NCBI RefSeq assembly: GCF_000143415.4
Contig: NW_003314311.1
Coordinates: 664,181 to 728,180, forward strand
From: Selaginella moellendorffii
Taxonomy: Eukaryota; Plantae; Lycopodiophyta
Reading direction: 5' to 3'
Length of the DNA: 64,000 nucleotides
Part shown: one piece after another, positions 18,104 through 49,204 of the stretch
Position numbering within the stretch: the first letter of the stretch is position 1
How the letters are laid out: each line of letters starts with the position of its first letter
Program-made: the position numbers and the translations under genes
The notes under the pieces: model-generated
Databases searched by the model: none
What the model was told of the DNA's origin: nothing
Seen by the model: only the letters and a program-made list of their open reading frames with translations

Positions 18104-21100
18104 TCAAGATCGGGGTTGTAGCGACGAACTCATCGACCTGAGCTCGCTGGCAATCTCGGCAAACGATGGCCTCGCCGAGGGATCGGCGTCCCAGCAGCGT
18201 TCCATCAGAGACCTCCACGCTGGCTCACACCAATTTGGAATCGGTGGACGAAGCGTGTTGCTAACAATGCCACCTGGTTTTGACACGAAAAGCTTCAAGA
18301 TGAAACGATCTCGAAAAACATCTCACCTATGATCGCTCCGTAGTGCATGTTTGCATAAGGCTCCTCTCCGGTGAGAAGCTCCCACATAACTATCCCGAAT
18401 GAGAAAACATCCACCTGATATACCAAAACACATCGCCGCTATAAAACCGAAAGAAGGATTCTGGGTGCCGAAGTCACTTACTCTCTCACTGACCATACAA
18501 CTCGAGGTGCTCAAGAGCTCAGGAGCCATCCACGGCAATGTTCCTCGGACGCCACCAGACACCATTGTCTGGCGCTTAACTTTCGACAGTCCCAGATCTC
18601 CAACCTGGAAACGTGCACAGTCACTCACTACAAAGCGAAAGAACGAGAGACGAAGATATCATTACCTTGCACACTGGCCGATGTGGATCCCTCATGTTGA
18701 CCAGCAAATTCTCGCACTTCAGGTCGAAATGAACGATGTTCTTTCCGTGTAGATACTCCATCCCAAAAGCAGCGTCTGTTGCTATCAACAGTCGCTTCCG
18801 ACGATCAATGGTTCTGAAATCTGGCAAGTTAGCCGATACAGTCCATCCTCTTTTGAGTTCACGTACCTGTCTTTCTTCTGAAGCACTTGCTTCAACGATC
18901 CATTTACCATATACTCTGTGACGGTTGCCAGCGTTCCGCCAGGGCCATCGGGAACCACGCCGTAGAAAGCCACAACATTCGGATGGTGGAGCTTACTCAG
19001 CGTGCCCGCCTCTCTCCAGAAATCAAGTATCTGGAAGAAGGTTGTTCAGTTTGGAACGTTTTAATGGGAGGATACATACCAGACGATCTCGTTCCACCGG
19101 CCTTCCTTCGAAACAGCTCGCTTTTATACGCTTAATCGCGACATCTGTTCCCCTCCACTTTCCATGGTAGACTGTACCATATGTTCCAGATCCGAGCTCT
19201 CGGATTTCCTCGAGATCGGAGTTTTTTATTATCTAATCATAACATCAAAAGCATGTTAGCCGAGTCAACGACAAGAAGAAATAAACAAAATTACCTGCAA
19301 GCCACGAGATTTCGCTTCCTGTTCCGCAGCTAACGAGATATCACCTGGAGGAGGAGAGTCATGGCTGGCTTCAGCCTGAAAAGACAGGTTAGCTAAAGAG
19401 GATATAAAAACAAGAGACCACCTTATCATGAGCTTCAACGCTAGTATGCTCTCTACATGCCTCGTTTTCGGTAATAGGCTCCTCGTCACGGCAAAGAACT
19501 TTGTCCCAGTTCTGCACAGTCAACGTTGGTTGTGGCACCAGATCCAATTCCTGGACAGGTTCAATCTCCTTCTGAACTGGAAAATTTGACGACGTTGCCG
19601 GAAACTCGTAGTTGGACCTCAACACTGACGAAACCATGTCTTCCGCCAGATGACCAGTTTCCGACATCATGTGAGAAAGCTTGCGGGATGCGTCGTCATC
19701 AATTTCACTCTTCACAGCACTTGCTTCGAGGTCCCCAGCCCCAATGCTCCGATTCCACTGAGATATGGTATCGAAAATGGGAAGACTAACAGAAGGAGCA
19801 CAACTGTAAGCTGCGGATGCCTGCTGACTCTGAGCTGCTGAACCAACCTGGCTGACTAGACCTGTAAGATTATTATTGCTGGAAGGCCTAGCGATGTTTA
19901 CTCTCGCGCTAGAGCCCGTATCAGTGAGGAGATCCGGTGTCTCGTCTTCGGTCATCCATCTGCTGCCAAATCCTGTCTCGGAAGTATTTATCCCTGACGT
20001 CGATGACCGGTTCAATGGCTGGGAGTCCATAAATTTTGGAGGAACCTGACTAGAGGGCCCAATGCCACTTCCGTGCACCACAAAAGGCAGCGAGTTCGTA
20101 ACAGCTTGGCGGAGCTCAGGCTGCAGGAAAAAGAAAATATATAAATGTAAGCTTCAAAAGAGAAGAACACGAGGCGAGTGGTTTACCTCGATGAGTGGTT
20201 TTTGATTCCTAAGCCCCGAGTCTTCTGCTTCCAAGTTTCTCTCTTGCCAGTCGACGACCTCTGGTTGATGGCCATGAAGCGAAAGTTGCTCCATTTGCAC
20301 CAGATGGTCTTGGTAATCAAATCTGGGATTCAAGTGCGGAGATGTTTTAACTTGGCGCCTTGGCTCGCCACCTCTTTGACCATTGTCCGGATAATAGAAA
20401 GAATTTTCCTGATATCCTGGACCGTATAGGCCCATAGGTTGCCTGGGTAGCATCTCTGGTCCTTGCTTCTTGTCGAACATAAGAGCCATAGCCACTTGAT
20501 CCGATGGAAACCGCTCATGATGTAGAAACGGCAACGGTTCATCAAGGTGATGATCACGATAGCGAGGTGGCGACGATGAAAGCCTGTAGCCCCGACCGGA
20601 TTCTTCGTGTGTATGAGGCCTCCTTCCATATTGATGGTCGACGGGATTTCCAGGATACGGCCTATGCACACTCAACTGCGGATGGAGTCTGCCATCACGG
20701 TACGCTAGTCGAGGTGAAGATGGCGACGATCCAATCTGATATGGAGCTGAGTGAGCTCCCATCCCGCCACCATCTCCGTGATTAGAGTTTCTCTGGTACA
20801 GATGACCAGGACAATAGTCCTCGTGCTGGATAAAGTCGTGGCCTTGATAATCGTCCGGAAGCTGGTGGCGGTGGTATGCTTCAGCTCTGTACACGGGATC
20901 CTTGAGATACACCACCGGCTGCGCTTGTTGGTGCTGAAGCATATGTGGGAATCCACTGTCGGAGTGCTGAAACTCTGGCCTCCTGTAATCCTGGTTGCTA
21001 TCGAGAGGGTGTTGACGATGTGGCTGCGGCGGCTGCACGACGAACCTTGGCCTCGGCTCCATAAAAAGGTCGTGAGGTAGCAAGTCCTGCTGCTGCTGCT

Positions 21101-22494
21101 GCTGGCTGTCATCAAGTTGCTGCTCCTGAAGCCTTGAAAGCTTCCCATGAGAGCCAACCCGAGGCATCTTCGTCTCGTGAGGATAGCCACGTAGAATCCG
21201 GTCATGATCATGCGTCACCTCCGCTCGAGAATTTGGATAGTAGTGATCCAAGTCGAAGTGGCCTACGTCCGTGTTTAAGTTCCCAAAGTGCTGCTGCTGG
21301 CTATCATCAAGTTGCTGCTCCTGAAGCCTTGAAAGCTTCCCATGAGAGCCAACCCGAGGCATCTTCGTCTCGTGAGGATAGCCACGTAGAATCCGGTCAT
21401 GATCATGCGTCACCTCCGCTCGAGGATTTGGATAGTAGTGATCCAAGTCGAAGTGGCCTACGTCCGTGTTTAAATTCCCAAAGTGCTGCTGCTGTCCTTC
21501 CGATGCAAACATCCCGTAAGCATGACCCCCAAGATTCCTGGCATACGGCTGCTGTGGGACTAAAGCTGGCGACGACGACGCCGAGTTAAAGGCCCCCTGT
21601 AGCTTCTTAGCGAGTAACTGCTCTTCGAGGGTGGCGTCTAAAGCAACAAGATTCTCAGCGCTGGGACGAGCACTAATGCCACCGCCACTGACCCCACTCT
21701 CGGATTTCCTCGACCCCGTTTCCAGCAACCCGTTGACAGCCTCCACGTACCACTGCTCGGACTTTCTCGGGTCCAAAGGATCGATCGAGAGGCTCTCACC
21801 ATCAGCAACCGAGAAGAGAAACACCCTGAGCCGCTGCAAGCCATCGTTGTCCTCGAGCCGGTCATACTCCTCCATCATGTTTTGCAAGTCCTCGTCGGTA
21901 GAGACCGATATCAATGCGTCCAGATCCTCGTTGGGCAACTGGTACTTAAGTGACAGATCCTCCCCGTAGTGCTTCTTCATCTTGAGCATGAGCTCCGCGT
22001 AGCTCACGTCCCTCTTGAGGCTCACAATTCGCGTCTCGCCACCAACGTACCGGAGCTTTCCATCGGATGGACGTGGAAGAATTCGCCCACCAAAGCTACA
22101 CATGAGCTTCACGCGTGAAGGCGAGGCCTCTTCTCTCGATCGATTCTGGCCGCCTGGAAGAACGAAGCGAGGGATAAGCGAGAGAAAACATTTCGCCATC
22201 CAGTATCGAGATATTTATACCTGAGTCGTAATCCAGGCGTCCCATGGCCGGGGATCCAATCATTCCCTGGTCCGTCCCGGATTCATCGTCCTCAATTGGG
22301 GGCAAGCTGTCGATCGAGGACAGAGATCCGCCATCGGGGAAGCACTGCCATGTCTGCACGGATCTCCCGCTGTGAAATCCCTCCTCGATATTGGGGCCGA
22401 GCTTGTGCTGCTGCTCCATTCCAGCTGAAATCGCAGAAATTCCAGTGCCGCGCCGGTAATTTCCAAGGACATTATCATCAGACACAAGCATCAT
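18104..22494 (-). CDS. PB1-domain Raf-like MAPKKK (group B4 RAF), multi-exon
   Basis: PB1 domain [28 protein letters not shown]...[14 protein letters not shown]. Kinase motifs [47 protein letters not shown] and RPSFAEI. Confidence 0.95.
21105..21494 (-). repeat. In-frame 195-bp tandem duplication inside the Raf kinase linker
   Basis: Two copies (21105-21299, 21300-21494) encode QQQHFGN...EQQLDDS; 3 substitutions seen between them. Confidence 0.95.
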
Positions 22495-34815: not shown

Positions 34816-35451
34816 ATTGAGTTAGATCTTCTAGACTTTTCTGGTGTGAGCTCAAAGTTCCTGGTTTTATTTAAGGTGTTATTTTTAGAAACCTTTTTAA
34901 ATTATCATATACTGTAGCTAGATTATAGTTGTGCATTTTTTTCCTTAATATATTTGTGTTTTTAGATACATGTATGTATATATATGTATTACCTTAACTT
35001 TAACTAAGTAATACATTAATTATATGGACCATCTATTTAGAATTGAATTTGGTCCATTCATTCTTATATATAAATAAGGGTTTAAACCCCAATTAATATA
35101 TTTATTCTTATATCCCAATCACTCATATTGCCCAAACATTCATAATGTTTGTTTTTTGGAATATTTTGAATTTTTTCAGACTTTGGTATAGCTTATACAT
35201 CTCTGTAAATCTTTAGTTTATTATTCATGATTATAATTTGTTTAAAATTGGAAAATTGATAAAGTTTACTATAATATCTTTCAAAAATATAGAAATATAT
35301 TTGATATGGTTGGTTTTTAAAATTGTGGTTGAATTTAGGATAAGTAGTTTAAAATTTAGGATAAGTAGTTTTATTATAACACTATAAATTTTAAAGAATT
35401 TATTTACTTTTTTAATTTTCTAATCCATAATTATATTTAGTGATAATATAT

Positions 35452-35555
35452 TGTAAGCAACCGAAGAGAATGGTGAATAGTCTTGGGATACTTAAGGTTA
35501 AATGTCCTTTGGTTTAAGTAATATTGAGAATGATCTATGAGGAAAGAAGTTTACA
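35452..35555 (+). mobile_element. Decayed relic of the 5S-bearing (Cassandra-like) LTR
   Basis: GTCTTGGGATACTTAAGGTTAAATGTCCTTTGGTTTAAGTAATATTG aligns to the reverse complement of about 48590-48640. Confidence 0.65.
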
Positions 35556-36097
35556 CATTAAACTGTTTATTTTTATTTTTATTTATGAACAAATAAAATA
35601 TATAAAATATATACCTAATATTGGGAAAATAAATATACTCCACAATAAAAACTGTAACATGTTGCTATCCCACTTATCTATAACCAAAACATTTAGTAGA
35701 ATATGCTTAAAGAAATGAAAAAATGCTCGTTAAATATTAAGAATATCCTTCTCAGCCATTAATGTTTGCTAATATTTATAAATGAAATCCAACTTGGTGA
35801 GCTAATAGCTTTGCTTTAGACAATTTAGGAGATCTACAATATAAGGAAGTTGGATATACATATGGAATTGTTATATTGTTCAATGGATAATAATCAATAC
35901 ATAATCAAATACCTCTATTAGACTTTATTAGAAAATGAAGATCACAAGCCTAAGGATAAGTTAGCATAAATAACAATTTTCTCCAATATCTCTTTAATAT
36001 TGACTTGCAAAATCGCAATATTTTAATCTCCTAGTGACCAATGCTAAACATATATCTTTATCAAATGAGGTTATCTCTAATATGAATAGGAGGCGTC

Positions 36098-36480
36098 TGT
36101 AAACTCTTGAGTTTAGACTTTAAACCTTTAATTAATTGGAAAAAAAGAGTGCACTCTTATTTATGGGCTTTTTCTTTCTATATTGAAACTTTATAGATAA
36201 TCTTTGATTATTTATAATCCATTATGTTTAACTTTTGAAAGCCTCGCTCTATTGATGGATTGAGGCTAAATTGGAACCTTCTAGATGTGGTGTGATTCCT
36301 TTAGCAAATCAATAGAGTTGGGATTTAAAACTTTTTTAATACCAAATATAATTTAAGCTTTTTAAGAGGTTATCCAGCCTATATTACTCAAGTCTAAAGA
36401 CATTTAACCCCAAATATCCCAAAGTGCACCCTTTTTTAAAGGTCTTTATTTATGGGTTCTTTCCCTCTATATTTTAATTT
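36098..36480 (-). mobile_element. Decayed TRIM relic related to the element at 48152-48721
   Basis: TGTAAACTCTTGAGTTTAGACTT and ATTGGAAAAAAAGAGTGCACTCTT resemble 48552-48671. Internal TTCTAGAT..ATTCCTTTAG, a PBS remnant ATACCA near 36339 and a second LTR piece TTAACCCCAAATATCCCAA are also present. Confidence 0.6.
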
Positions 36481-37544
36481 TATGAATGTTTTTTAAGTCA
36501 TTCTCTGTAATTAATTATAACATTACAAAAGATAAATTGAAGTTGAAGAGATCAATATACTCTTTCTTGAGCTGATCAATTGACATTTCATAAAAACTAT
36601 TTGAGGAAGGAAAACAAAAGGAAATAAAGGTGATATAAAAGTAATTGAAATAAATATAGAAGAAAATTTACAAAGTGAAATAAAAGTGAGAGTAATGAAA
36701 AAGATATAAAGAGGTATGAGACAAATGAAGAAGCTTCATAATCATTTATAATATAATTTTTCTTCAATTAATTTACACTAAGGATGAGGTTAAAAACTTG
36801 ATTTGGCACTACCTAAACTTAGAACTCAAACATGTGATCAGCCACACATATTCCAATTGTTTTATCCTTATTCATACAATAGGCTAAGTGGAATTCAAAC
36901 CTATTATAAAGAGGATATTAAATAACTTTTTATTATAAAAATAAACTTGAAAAACCAGATAAACTAGTGCTAAATGAACCCCTCAATAATACACTCAACA
37001 AAAGGATGGAGGAGTTACTAATTTATTCATTCAAAGACCTTTATTACTCATATAATTGCTCAATTCTTTAAAAAAAATTTTGTATCAAGCTTTTCCATTA
37101 TAACAACATCAATAGCATGTTGTCCATGCCAAAGTCTCTACCTAGAAAATATAAAACACTAATTTGTGAAATGACCTAAATTAAAATATTCCTAAAAGAA
37201 TGTTTTAATCCTCATGAATTGTTATATGTACCACTTGAATAAAATCATCCCAGGAATGATAAATGATAATCACTATAAAATGATCAAACCAATTATATAC
37301 ATAGAATTCCCATAAAAAACAATTAAAATTTAGTAAGAGCAAAAAGATGAGTTGCACATGTGTTGTGAATGCCACTATAAAGTGAGTTTAATTATCTAGT
37401 TGCAGCCATAACACAATTGAGAAATTACAATAATTACTACTCCACAAACAAAGTATTTGCCACACAACCATTATTGCCTCTTGCCAAAAAGAGGAGAAAC
37501 TAAAGAAAAAATAGTGAAAAAACCACAATAATACACACATACAC

Positions 37545-37644
<100 letters not shown>

Positions 37645-39283
37645 CTGTTGTTATTTTAAATTAATACAAATTTAGGGTATGCTGCCTATAATCACCAAGT
37701 CCTTAGGATGAAAAAACAATTATAAAAAAAAATTAAAAAAGTGTAGTAAAAAACAAGGCACAATCAATATTACTTTTCACCTTCACTAATGTGAGAGTTT
37801 CAAATATAGAAATCTACATTTGTATTAGTTAAAACATTAGTTTATATACAAGAGTGAGTTGCTTGGATTGAATTTAATCTAATGGTTACCAAAATATAAC
37901 TATGTTAATAATAGTATATGACATTTATAGTTCACATTTAGACATCACAACCTTAACTAAGTAGCAAATTTTTCTTTTGCTTTATTTGAACGAATTAATC
38001 TTGATTATATACTAATTGATTTCATTAAAGAGTATCTCCATATTTTTAATTGATATTTCTTCATCTAAATAATATAATGCACTATTGATGTTTATCTATT
38101 GTATTTTATCATCATTTAGGACTAATAGTTAATTTTCTTAGCATGATGTATTTTTTTTAATAAATTTAATAAATTATTATATTTATCTATACTATATAAT
38201 ATAATTTTAGCTTAGTAGTAGTAGATCATACTAGTTTTTCTATAAAAGGTCATCCCTTTAATTTATGACATAGACATATAGATGGCATATATTTACTAGT
38301 TTTGTTTATAAAAAGAAAATAAAAATAAAAATAAAAATAAAAATATCAACTAAAATACTGCTTATTATATCAATTATAAAATTGTTTTTATGTATAATAT
38401 AACATATTAACTTTGGAAAAGTACTTTATTAAAATTCCTTTGATTTTTATAAATTTTTGATTAAGTTTTATATTCATAAATTAAGTATGTATCTAAAGTT
38501 TTGGAAATACTTAGATTATATCTTCTATCGTTGGACAGTTTTTAAATTATATAAATTTATTTTAATTAATTATAAATATTTTAATTTTCTTTAGACTATA
38601 GCCATTAATACTCTATAGCTAAATAGTTATTAATGCATTTTATCCACACACATTAGCAATTCCTATGGATGATGTAAAATATTTTTGCTGAGTATTATAA
38701 TGACTCATAAGCGTATATAATTTTAATATGCATTTTATATTAAGTAATATGCATAAAACAATTTGATTTTATATAAATCAACATCTATAAAATTTTGATG
38801 TTGAATTTTATTTAAGATTTCTTAAAATAGAGATAAATTAAAATGCAATTTTCAATAGATTTACTTGTTCTTTTTGTGACGTGTACTTATAGATTGTTCT
38901 AGTACACTATTTTACACTATAATTTTTAACCTTAAACACTTAAAGCAAAAATTCTCTTTTATTTATTTAATAGAATTTATTTCTGAACACTAAAGAGGTT
39001 AAAGTTTAACTATGAATATTGGACCTTTTGTTGGATTCATGCGCCTTGCAGCAAGAGCAGCCATATTATATATATACACACGTTTACCCCCACTGGATTC
39101 TTCTTACCGCGTGAAAGAAAACCTATCGGGGATTGTCTTATTTCTTTTTACTCTTTGGTTGCTGCTGGTTCTTGTCTCGATCCTTGCTACAAAATGTTGC
39201 TAGCCGCGATACGCTAGTAAAACCTAGAAATTTGAAGCAATGGAAGTTATGTAAATATTAGTCTGAACGAGTTCTTACCTGGT

Positions 39284-41542
<2,259 letters not shown>

Positions 41543-45519: not shown

Positions 45520-46250
45520 TGAAATTGAACCATATTAAAACCAGATTGTGTTGTTTATTAATATTAAAAGCAAGATTATGTTTTAGCTTTTATAGTACTT
45601 CATAGAATGATATGTCATCAACTATTGAAGGCTACATTATGTTTCAGTTTCTTAAGAAAACAATGATCTAATATAATAAACCATTAATAACATAATCTAT
45701 ATTGAAAATTAGATTGTGTATCAATTTTATAATAGTGCTCAAGAGAATCATATTGAAAAAAAACCATTGAGTTTCAATTTCATATTAATTTTTCATGATT
45801 AGATAGTGTAAACCATATCATTAGCTATGCTGAAAACTATATTATGTTTTTGATTTTGTATTAGATATATATCTATATTGAAAACTATATTCTATTCCAC
45901 TTTCAGAATAATGCTTAAAAGAACTATATGTTATCTATATTAAAAACCATATTGTGTTTCAAATACCATAAGATTATCTATTGAAAATTAAATTGTGTTC
46001 CAGGTTTAAAATTGTGCTTGAGAGAATCATATGTTATCTACATTAAAAACCATATTGTATTCCATTTGTGTATTACATATAATACACCACAATATTGAAA
46101 ACTAGATTATATTCCATTTTCAGAATAATACTTGAGAGAACCATATGTTATGTATATTGATAACTAGATTCAGTTCGGTTTTCATAACTATATTTTGAAT
46201 TCATTTATTCAAACCATATAGGTTTTATATGAAAGTTATGTGAAAACCAC
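45520..46250. repeat. Degenerate AT-rich tandem repeat array
   Basis: Recurring ATTGAAAA(C/T)TA(G/T/A)ATT...GAGAA(T/C)CATATGTTAT units near 45701, 45877, 45980 and 46094, with shorter AAAACCATATT subunits. Confidence 0.75.
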
Positions 46251-47336: not shown

Positions 47337-48151
47337 CGGCGCAGCAGCACCAAGTGGGAGCTCGCCACTCTCGCCTGCGAAACCTCAAGCCCGTTGCTTG
47401 GGGCTTAGCAACTTAGAGCTTAATCTACGATAAAACCCTAGCCCTAAACCTAGCGCGATATTGTCCTATTTCTAGGGCTTTACTAGGGCTTCGAATTTCT
47501 TGGTATGGCAGGTATGATCTTCCTTGCAGCACTCGCGCTTTGCAATCTCGCCAGCGGCAGCAGCAAGCTCGACGCCATCGCCTTCCAGCGCAGGGATCTC
47601 TTCCCGGAAGGGATCGACTGGGACGAAAATCACGGCCGATTTCTGCTAGGATCAATGGGCAGGGGCTCCATTTGGTCCCTCTCCGACACAGGGAAGCTCG
47701 ACCTCTTCGTGGAGGACGAAGATTTCTCCGGGAAACACCCAGTCCTGGGCGTGAGAGTGGATCCCTCTCGCAACAGAGTCCTCGCTGTGATCCACAATTT
47801 CGACGACTCCACGCCGGCCTTCGATGCCGTGGCGAGCTACGACTTGGATTCCAGCGCCAGGAATTTCCTCGTCCGCCTCGACAGCATTGGAGCTCCTGGA
47901 TCGACGAAGAAACCAGTGGCGAACGATGTCACAGTCGATCGAGAGGGAAATCTCTACGTGACAAACTCGGCGCACAATTTCATCTGGAAGGCAACTCCCG
48001 ACGGTAAAAACGCGAGCGTTTTCACCGAGAGCACAGTTTTTACGTCGCCGCCGGTGGTGACAAAGGACGAGCACGTCCGGCCTTGCGGGTTGAATGGGAT
48101 CGTCTACCACTGGGACAACTATCTCCTGGTCGGGCAGAGCAACACGGGCAT

Positions 48152-48545
48152 TGTTAGGCACCAGGTCAAAATAATAGGATAAAGAAAGGGCCTTGCAATC
48201 AAGTGATCACCCCTTTAGCCAGTTGGCTTAGGGTGTAAGGGATAGGATCCTAACATTGGTATCGGAGCCCAGTTCGATTCTCGTGGCTGACGAGTGGGGC
48301 AGAATATTCTAAAGGAATATTCAACATGATGGATCTAGAGGGAGAACCAAGGTTTGGTAGACCCTAAGAGAAGGACCATGGTGACCGGATGGTGGCCTAA
48401 GTATGATTGTGGACGATCATTCCCTGACGAGGGGGAGGATTGTTTAGGCACCAGGTCAAAATAATAGGATAAAGAAAGGGCCTTGCAATCAAGTGATCAC
48501 CCCTTTAGCCAGTTGGCTTAGGGTGTAAGGGATAGGATCCTAACA
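48152..48545 (+). mobile_element. Complete TRIM (non-autonomous LTR retrotransposon)
   Basis: LTR1 48152-48255 and LTR2 48441-48545 (TG...CA, identical except one extra T); tRNA-Met-type PBS TGGTATCGGAGC at 48257; polypurine tract GAGGGGGAGGA at 48429-48439. Confidence 0.93.
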
Positions 48546-48551
48546 TTCAAA

Positions 48552-48721
48552 TGTAAGCTCCTGAATTTGGACTTCCCGGGAGGTCAACCAGCCCAGTACT
48601 ATTCAAACCCAAGGACGCTTAACCCCAAGTATCCCAAGACCCTTAACCGATTGGAAAAGGGGGTGCACTCTTGATTGCAAGGCCCTTTCTTTATCCTATT
48701 ATTTTGACCTGGTGCCTAACA
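48552..48721 (-). mobile_element. Inverted 170-bp LTR carrying a 5S rRNA-derived domain (Cassandra-like)
   Basis: TG...CA ends. Minus strand 48623-48569 reads GTTAAGCGTCCTTGGGTTTGAATAGTACTGGGCTGGTTGACCTCCCGGGAAGTCC, matching the A-box to C-box part of plant 5S rRNA. Its first 52 bp are identical to the TRIM LTR. Confidence 0.88.
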
Positions 48722-49204
48722 GGCATGCTGTTTAAGACCAACTTGCGAGGCGATCAAGCCCACCTGGTGAAGATCTCCACTCCACTCGTGGGTGGTGATG
48801 GCATGGCGCTGCGCCAGGACGGTGCTTTGATCGTCGTCTCCAGCTCCAAGGCCTGGCTGCTGAGGAGCAGTGATCACTGGCGAAGCGCGAGCGTGGCGGA
48901 CGAGTTGCGATTGAATGAGACGGGCTTTGCCACCGCCGTGACGGTCCGGGACGGCCTCAAGGCGTACGTGCTGCATAGCTTCCTGCTGGAGCTCAAGCGG
49001 GGGTCCTCCAGGAGTGACTTTCTCGTCGAGCGCGTGGAGTTTCCAAAGGACGCGTACGATGATCCGGTGTGGCTCATTCTCGTGCTCGTCGTCGCGGTGG
49101 TGCTCGTCTTTGCCTGGAGGTTCCAGATGTCTCGTTTCTTCGACGACTACAGGAGGAAGAGGCAGTAACTGATCAACAGAGACGAATAAAAGAACCGGGC
49201 AGGA

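Follow-up and report, generated by a model that had tools for sequence, protein, structure and literature searches.

How does an insertion built from retroelement parts come to have the same kind of long terminal repeat (LTR) terminus, the U3 (unique 3′) end, on both of its outer sides? The question is raised by a 570-bp insert at 48152-48721 in a stretch of 64,000 nucleotides of the Selaginella moellendorffii genome (contig NW_003314311.1), called here the window. Coordinates are positions in this window, and refer to the plus strand unless stated. The insert interrupts the gene LOC9648257, and consists of a complete terminal-repeat retrotransposon in miniature (TRIM) followed by a single LTR in inverted orientation. 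We consider it probable, at roughly 0.78, that one integrase event inserted a chimeric cDNA by means of its two identical U3 termini. The chimera would comprise the complete 394-bp TRIM cDNA and exactly one LTR of a 5S rRNA-bearing TRIM resembling Cassandra, joined U5 (unique 5′) to U5. On the same reading the host is a single-exon gene that carries the insertion on one haplotype.

Anatomy of the insert and the interrupted gene

The features of the locus are collected in Table 1. Those marked out in the original prediction, i.e., the GGCAT pair, the LTRs, the primer-binding site (PBS), the polypurine tract (PPT), the TTCAAA junction, the inverted LTR and the 52-bp inverted repeat, are all confirmed at their positions.

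Table 1. Coordinates of the insert, its component parts and the two halves of the host gene (TSD, target-site duplication)
Feature	Position	Strand	Remarks
Host gene, N-terminal 215 codons, LOC9648257	47505-48149	+	100% identity to XP_024542545.1 residues 1-215
Left TSD copy, GGCAT	48147-48151		Empty-site reconstruction takes a single GGCAT (codons GGC ATG)
LTR1 of TRIM, 104 bp, TGTTAGG...CCTAACA (TG..CA)	48152-48255	+	5′ end is the left outer U3 terminus
TRIM internal region, 185 bp, non-coding	48256-48440	+	T spacer (1 nt), PBS, PPT, final T
PBS TGGTATCGGAGC	48257-48268	+	tRNA-iMet type, 1 mismatch to TGGTATCAGAGC
PPT GAGGGGGAGGA	48429-48439	+	Adjoins 3′ LTR
LTR2 of TRIM, 105 bp	48441-48545	+	Extra T at position 5
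U5-to-U5 junction, TTCAAA	48546-48551		From printed junction sequences
Single inverted 170-bp LTR, TG..CA on minus strand	48552-48721	-	U3 terminus is the right outer end
5S rRNA-like segment in inverted LTR	48555-48642	-	Rfam RF00001, 35.1 bits
Right TSD copy, GGCAT	48722-48726		Second GGCAT
Host gene, C-terminal 147 codons and stop	48725-49168	+	147/147 identity to XP_024542545.1 residues 216-362

The two direct LTRs of the TRIM are identical at 104 of 104 aligned positions, with 0 substitutions, and are distinguished by one 1-nt indel, an extra T in LTR2 (TGTTTAGG in place of the TGTTAGG of LTR1). At the outer ends of the insert, 48152-48203 is the exact reverse complement of 48670-48721. 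This perfect run of 52 bp is part of a longer inverted arm that reaches 83 nt at 88% identity. With their precise TG/CA ends, both outer termini are U3 termini, as had been proposed. The arrangement is nevertheless less anomalous than the proposal had made it, since the termini of the TRIM LTR are themselves 7-bp inverted repeats of each other (TGTTAGG...CCTAACA). A molecule with two U3 ends should therefore be acceptable to the integrase, as its last 7 bp match those of a normal U3/U5 molecule.

The sequence GGCAT lies on both flanks of the 570 bp, a match with a chance probability of ~1/1024 when taken alone. The TRIM by itself is flanked by GGCAT and TTCAA, and the inverted LTR by TTTGA and GGCAT, so that neither component has a separate TSD at its flanks. 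When 48152-48726 is deleted, local translation gives a single uninterrupted frame of 362 amino acids, and no host base has been lost or gained at the site. (The host halves, 47505-48149 and 48725-49165, were searched as separate proteins, and their join was only translated locally.) The single TSD, the lack of a component TSD and the exact restoration of the frame therefore indicate that the 570 bp entered as one unit, in agreement with the original prediction. The exactness of the 5-bp TSD, in turn, argues for concerted integration of two ends.

The protein XP_024542545.1 is from S. moellendorffii, and the names of its relatives place it in the SMP-30/gluconolactonase/LRE-like group. The protein cluster comprises two loci on two scaffolds. 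For the locus on the 1.47-Mb scaffold, the JGI model EFJ17166.1 corresponds exactly to 47514-48164 plus 48737-49165; it translates five codons (IVRHQ) into LTR1, and splices out 48165-48736 as a 572-bp GT..AG intron. The RefSeq model XP_024542545.1 can be obtained only by removal of 48148-48722, a 575-bp GC..AG 'intron' inside the TSD ambiguity, and may rest on reads from the empty allele. From the intron boundaries of EFJ17166.1 and of the RefSeq model, the deposited assembly therefore carries the insert. Both public models for the insertion allele hide the insert as an intron.

At the second locus, LOC9632802 on the 3.15-Mb scaffold, EFJ31179.1 and XP_002967832.2 (5 amino acid differences) read ...NTGMLFKTN... 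straight through the site. Because the direct LTRs have 0 substitutions and the models of the other haplotype read through, the evidence points to an insertion that is heterozygous and very young. The recent date that was first suggested is thus upheld, with a single T distinguishing the direct LTRs. The insert-bearing allele would encode a protein truncated after residue 215, with 10 foreign codons before a stop at 48180-48182. Open reading frames of at least 60 amino acids that overlap the TRIM are limited to read-ins from the host frame and two others that continue into host sequence. Some 1.3 kb upstream of the interrupted gene, 45875-46175 contains three tandem AT-rich units with an 84-nt core, a spacing of ~105 nt and 80-83% identity.

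An ordinary TRIM and a 5S rRNA-bearing LTR

The first component has the properties of a TRIM. It has short direct TG..CA LTRs, a tRNA-iMet PBS and a PPT, is smaller than 1 kb and lacks coding capacity. Its PBS-like tRNA-iMet site is the sole one in the window. It departs from the class in having no 5-bp TSD of its own directly around the two LTRs, the TSD enclosing TRIM and inverted LTR together.

A TRIM of very similar size has been described from the same species. SmoRetroS4 is 393 bp long with a 104-bp LTR (reference copy ADFJ01000100:60349-60741; Gao et al., 2016, PMC4717578, Table S16), compared with 394 and 104 bp here, the comparison being one of dimensions only. Its putative autonomous partner is the Ty3-gypsy element SmoLTRA4 (ADFJ01000078:22401-26773), of 4,373 bp with a 1,218-aa polyprotein and 104-bp LTRs that are 98% identical (PMC4717578). 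A link from the TRIM studied here to the Gypsy element SmoLTRA4 is likewise a match of dimensions only. Helenus-1_SMo, of the tRNA-bearing Helenus TRIMs (Kojima, 2024), is unlike the present TRIM, with an LTR of 120 bp and an interior of 85 bp.

Two further sequence motifs occur within the TRIM. The sequence CTGACGAG followed by a G-run is present twice in the interior (48287-48294 and 48424-48431), ~20 nt past the PBS and in the 5′ flank of the PPT. These motifs resemble a hammerhead core; Rfam gives no ribozyme match, and we have rejected a hammerhead or retrozyme. A tRNA-gene-like A-box TAGCCAGTTGG and B-box AGTTCGATTCT, ~59 nt apart, span the LTR/PBS junction (48212-48285). A tRNA-like TRIM of the Helenus type was also rejected: ARAGORN found nothing, and across the junction Rfam gave no tRNA match with an E of 10 or less.

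The inverted LTR is of another kind. It is 66 bp longer than the direct LTRs, diverges from them past base 52, and contains a segment matching 5S rRNA. The match to RF00001 has E = 2.4e-5 when 901 nt are searched and 0.0017 for the whole window, and lies just below the gathering score of 38. The alignment covers model positions 1-120, with 36 model positions set against 4 nt, and ~32 nt of the 5′ half of the 5S sequence are gone. Cassandra elements are defined by the pattern RGTTAAGYRHGY-[18]-RRRATRGGTRACY (Kalendar et al., 2020, PMC7215508). Here box A (48613-48624) matches at 11 of 12 positions and box C (48582-48594) at 11 of 13, separated by a spacer of exactly 18 nt; the strict published pattern is unmatched in this LTR unless mismatches are allowed. 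Only 3-4 nt separate the 5S-like part from the 3′ end of the LTR. To judge by this 5S-like segment with its box A, 18-nt spacer and box C, the inverted LTR is that of a different, 5S rRNA-bearing Cassandra-like TRIM family, and not, as was first proposed, a sister of the TRIM LTR.

The similarity to Cassandra has definite limits. Both have a 5S-derived stretch in the LTR, with boxes A and C (here imperfect) set 18 nt apart (Kalendar et al., 2008; Kalendar et al., 2020, PMC7215508), and the PBS of fern Cassandra lies 8 nt from the 5S sequence, resembling the way in which the 5S part abuts the LTR 3′ end here. The inverted LTR differs in its box mismatches, in the loss of ~32 nt of 5S sequence, in a score below gathering and in its presence as a single LTR. 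Only one LTR of the Cassandra-like element is found in the insert, followed by TTTG and then by the inverted TRIM, and there is no TGGTATCAGAGC PBS 5-200 nt past box C. The missing PBS and second LTR are a property of this truncated copy, and not necessarily of the family. The accessible Cassandra literature places the family in ferns and seed plants, and does not describe it in lycophytes. Gao et al. (2016, PMC4717578) found 5S sequences in no TRIM family other than Cassandra, and list no 5S-bearing TRIM for Selaginella.

What the two LTR types have in common is confined to one end. The first 52 bases are identical; the 83-nt arm has 10 mismatches, every one of them in its final 31 nt (P = 1.8e-5), from which it follows that a terminal 5′ module is shared. 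Past this module the TRIM LTR ends, and the Cassandra-like LTR runs on through its 5S part. The two types therefore seem, on alignment, to share a mosaic 5′ module and nothing else. The earlier description of near-identical LTRs thus holds for the direct pair, and fails for the inverted LTR.

Older copies related to the 5S-bearing LTR are present elsewhere in the window, at ~35412-35570 (plus strand), 36099-36215 (minus) and 36352-36485 (minus), all three decayed by C-to-T changes. The family is therefore old in this genome. The U5 boundary ...TTACA of the inverted LTR recurs in the relic that ends at 35555. The copies at 36099-36215 and 36352-36485 flank a PBS-like AATACCAA at 36338-36345, and together look like an old minus-strand Cassandra-like TRIM. 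The similarity of the interior of the young TRIM to that of this decayed relic is not above shuffled controls. The copy at 35412-35570 is an inverted solo copy ~540 bp upstream of the other two. The order plus, minus, minus mirrors that of the insert; the copies are non-contiguous and too decayed for a second composite to be called at 35.4-36.5 kb.

The decayed relatives sit in an AT-rich stretch. The block 36001-40000 is very AT-rich (26% GC), with 264 N, an (AT)n run at 37547-37642 and a spurious mir-297 match. Elsewhere in the window, a 195-bp unit at 21094-21483 is present as a tandem duplicate with 98% identity.

The U5-to-U5 junction and the origin of the insert

The six bases between LTR2 and the inverted LTR can be divided between the two elements, and are unlikely to be random filler. 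The TT of TTCAAA comprises the same 2 nt that follow LTR1, where CA is followed by TTGGTATC. The remaining CAAA reads as TTTG on the other strand. In the relic at 36338-36362 a Cassandra-like LTR is followed by TTTGGTATT, and TTTG precedes GGTAT (36338-36349). The CAAA was thus probably contributed by the PBS-side bases of the Cassandra-like partner, and TTTGGTATC is a candidate for the sequence 3′ of the LTR in the 5S-bearing family. If TT and CAAA are so assigned, no base is untemplated, and a U5 end with 2 additional nt has been joined to a U5 end with 4.

In retroviral 3′ processing, integrase removes the bases beyond the CA before joining. Such bases have been kept on both sides of the junction, and the U5-U5 join was therefore not made by integrase. 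Probably two untrimmed cDNA ends, each on the primer-site side, were joined by something else. This agrees with the original proposal that two reverse-transcription products were joined tail to tail.

The following sequence of events would account for these observations. The RNAs or cDNAs of both elements would have been together in one particle or pre-integration complex. The partner with a single LTR, we infer, was either a plus-strand strong-stop duplex or a linear solo-LTR cDNA extending from the U3 terminus to U5 and a PBS stub; free solo-LTR cDNA is predicted by a model of pre-integration recombination (Zeng and Sun, 2018 preprint, 10.1101/452573). The U5 ends would then have been joined either by the host, through end-joining of the untrimmed cDNA ends in the manner of 2-LTR circles, or by an end-to-end template jump of reverse transcriptase. 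Integrase would have paired the two U3 ends and made its normal 5-bp staggered cut at GGCAT. We prefer a join before integration, the order given in the original prediction, to one made after strand transfer.

A number of points weigh against this account. The sequence fits a join before or after strand transfer alike. The assignment of CAAA depends on one decayed relic, no second copy of either family with an intact LTR/PBS junction being available. The LTR2/inverted-LTR junction is known from assembled sequence alone, the empty allele is deduced from protein models only, and the equation of the TRIM with SmoRetroS4 is drawn from dimensions alone (393/104 against 394/104 bp).

Other routes are rejected. 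Had the TRIM duplicated its own LTR in inverted orientation, by snap-back or self-priming, its own U5 end would stand on both sides of the junction; the far side is instead the U5 end of the other family. Neither of the products expected of autointegration, circles and an internal 5-bp duplication, is observed. As a matter of logic, inversion between the inverted LTRs of nested elements cannot alter the outermost ends.

Among the alternatives, the one that survives best differs from the preferred account in the timing of the join. The intasome might have paired two molecules by their U3 ends, the complete TRIM cDNA and a separate fragment of a Cassandra-like LTR, and inserted both into the staggered cut, with host end-joining then ligating the two free U5 ends and so resealing the chromosome. 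Concerted integration of two separate donor ends of one type is routine for purified integrases, and two identical U5 oligonucleotides have been used to build intasome structures; both facts favor such an event. So does the junction, which keeps the unprocessed CA+2 and CA+4 bases expected of ends that integrase has not touched. On the other side, the chromosome break would have to be bridged and repaired without loss, whereas a molecule joined beforehand needs no rescue. We regard integration of two donors as a possible course of events, decidedly the less likely of the two; the weight that we give it is contained within that of the main reading, and is not additional to it.

It is improbable that the TRIM and a Cassandra-like element or solo LTR were inserted separately at or near this site, with later deletion or rearrangement of the internal TSDs. 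Double insertion at one target is documented, including an inverted pair of Rover elements in Drosophila (PMC5932611), and the old Cassandra-like copies in the window show that the family has long been active here. However, under that model (PMC5932611) the junction of a double insertion retains a target-site copy, whereas here it is TTCAAA and not GGCAT; double insertion is rejected for this reason. In addition, no host base has been lost or gained, the direct LTRs have 0 substitutions and the models of the other haplotype read through the site. Nor could an inversion between the inverted arms have changed the outermost ends.

More doubtful still is the idea that the composite is a mobile family. 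The original prediction had allowed that it might move as a unit, in the manner of a miniature inverted-repeat transposable element (MITE). Such a family, similar to MITEs or to Ginger elements, would have 52-bp LTR-derived terminal inverted repeats (TIRs) and be moved as DNA by a Gypsy-type integrase. The perfect 52-bp TIRs are of the right form, the TGTTA termini fit the TGTNR pattern common to Gypsy LTRs and Ginger, and a 5-bp TSD is also made by TDD-4/5 (PMC2836005). Yet the window contains neither a further copy of the composite nor one of either young LTR, and the shared 28-mer gave 0 matches in metagenome contigs. Inside lies an intact retroelement with PBS, PPT and a second direct LTR, the junction bases resemble raw cDNA ends, and Ginger elements are not reported from plants in PMC2836005. 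The claim of mobility finds no supporting evidence, and we see no plausible route of replication. No retroelement integrase is known to excise chromosomal DNA. We give slightly less credence again to the insert, or siblings of it in the genome, being a proto-DNA-transposon, a short product of a retroelement accident with the same integrase-recognition end on both sides, that a Gypsy-type integrase could move once more, i.e., a living intermediate between LTR retrotransposon and Ginger in a plant.

An assembly artefact, a mis-join at the LTR2/inverted-LTR junction, is the least likely of all: the junction does fall between repeats, but the right boundary needs a read containing the inverted-LTR U3 and GGCATGCTG and the left one a read with host sequence and LTR1, an overlap error would need more than the 7 bp common to the U5 end of the TRIM and the U3 end of the inverted LTR, the gene model deposited in 2010 already reads into LTR1 at this point, and in an assembly that is presumably Sanger-based the 570 bp would probably be shorter than one read.

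On the preferred account of a single chimeric cDNA, the composite is best regarded as a dead-end copy. Transcription from LTR1 to LTR2 followed by normal strand transfers yields a plain TRIM only, and there is therefore no route by which the whole unit could be replicated. The TRIM part could still be transcribed and copied, without the inverted LTR. Pol III transcription from the inverted 5S promoter would yield an antisense RNA with no usable PBS. The insert thus represents a rare copying accident, and not a new kind of mobile element.

Comparison with known elements and significance

Inverted TRIM dimers within one TSD are already known, and have a published precedent in maize. Six inverted TA-TRIMs of the type 'R-L4I2' were counted there, comprising five of Zma-SMART and one of Zma-Cassandra (Gao et al., 2016, Genome Biol 17:7, PMC4717578, Figure 2C, Table S3). 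As in the present insert, inverted TRIM material lies inside a single 5-bp TSD, and one maize example of 559 bp was validated by PCR. The maize elements contain two complete TRIMs under a single subfamily, whereas the second arm here is a single LTR of another family. Neither the junction sequences nor a mechanism is given for R-L4I2 (PMC4717578). Three things are new at the Selaginella locus: the pairing is heterologous (an ordinary TRIM and an LTR bearing 5S sequence), one arm is a single LTR, and the junction is readable at every base.

Other systems share some of these properties. The junctions of 2-LTR circles arise by host end-joining of unprocessed linear cDNA ends. In retroviral circles the bases beyond CA are kept on both sides, as they are here; the circles join U5 to U3 of one molecule, head to tail, in contrast to the linear, integrated U5-U5 product of two elements described above. 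Complex elements with three LTRs, made during or after reverse transcription and before integration, are also abnormal multi-LTR products inside one TSD (Sabot and Schulman, 2007, PMC1950507; 10.1101/452573), although in these all the LTRs are direct and of one family. With TIRs of tens of bp, TGTNR termini and TSDs of 4-5 bp in Ginger elements, the composite resembles a non-autonomous member of that group (Bao, Kapitonov and Jurka, 2010, PMC2836005). Ginger elements are moved as DNA by a transposase that they either encode or depend on, whereas the insert has a PBS, a PPT and a direct pair of LTRs. The likeness to Ginger and TDD is real, but formal only.

The insert also has consequences for the locus. 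Its calculated minimum free energy of folding is -255.7 kcal/mol, compared with -173 ± 7 for shuffled sequences, and a read-through host transcript is predicted, by construction, to fold into a long terminal hairpin. An inverted copy of MuDR in maize, Mu killer, feeds small RNAs, and by analogy the hairpin locus could be a source of small RNAs directed against both families. One SMP-30/LRE-like allele is knocked out by the insertion, and two annotations of the gene have been misled by it.

As a structure the insert is a curiosity, a clean and young aberrant product of LTR retroelements with a junction legible at every base. More useful is the pairing of a TRIM and a Cassandra-like element, with a shared U3 terminus, in one integrase event. 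That the two elements have a 52-bp terminus in common and were integrated jointly suggests that one integrase serves both families; probably the same machinery copied them, or at any rate integrated them. Which autonomous element mobilizes Cassandra is an open question (Kojima, 2024). If the TRIM is SmoRetroS4, and if the shared module is family-wide, Gypsy elements of the SmoLTRA4 type would become candidate mobilizers of Cassandra in Selaginella.

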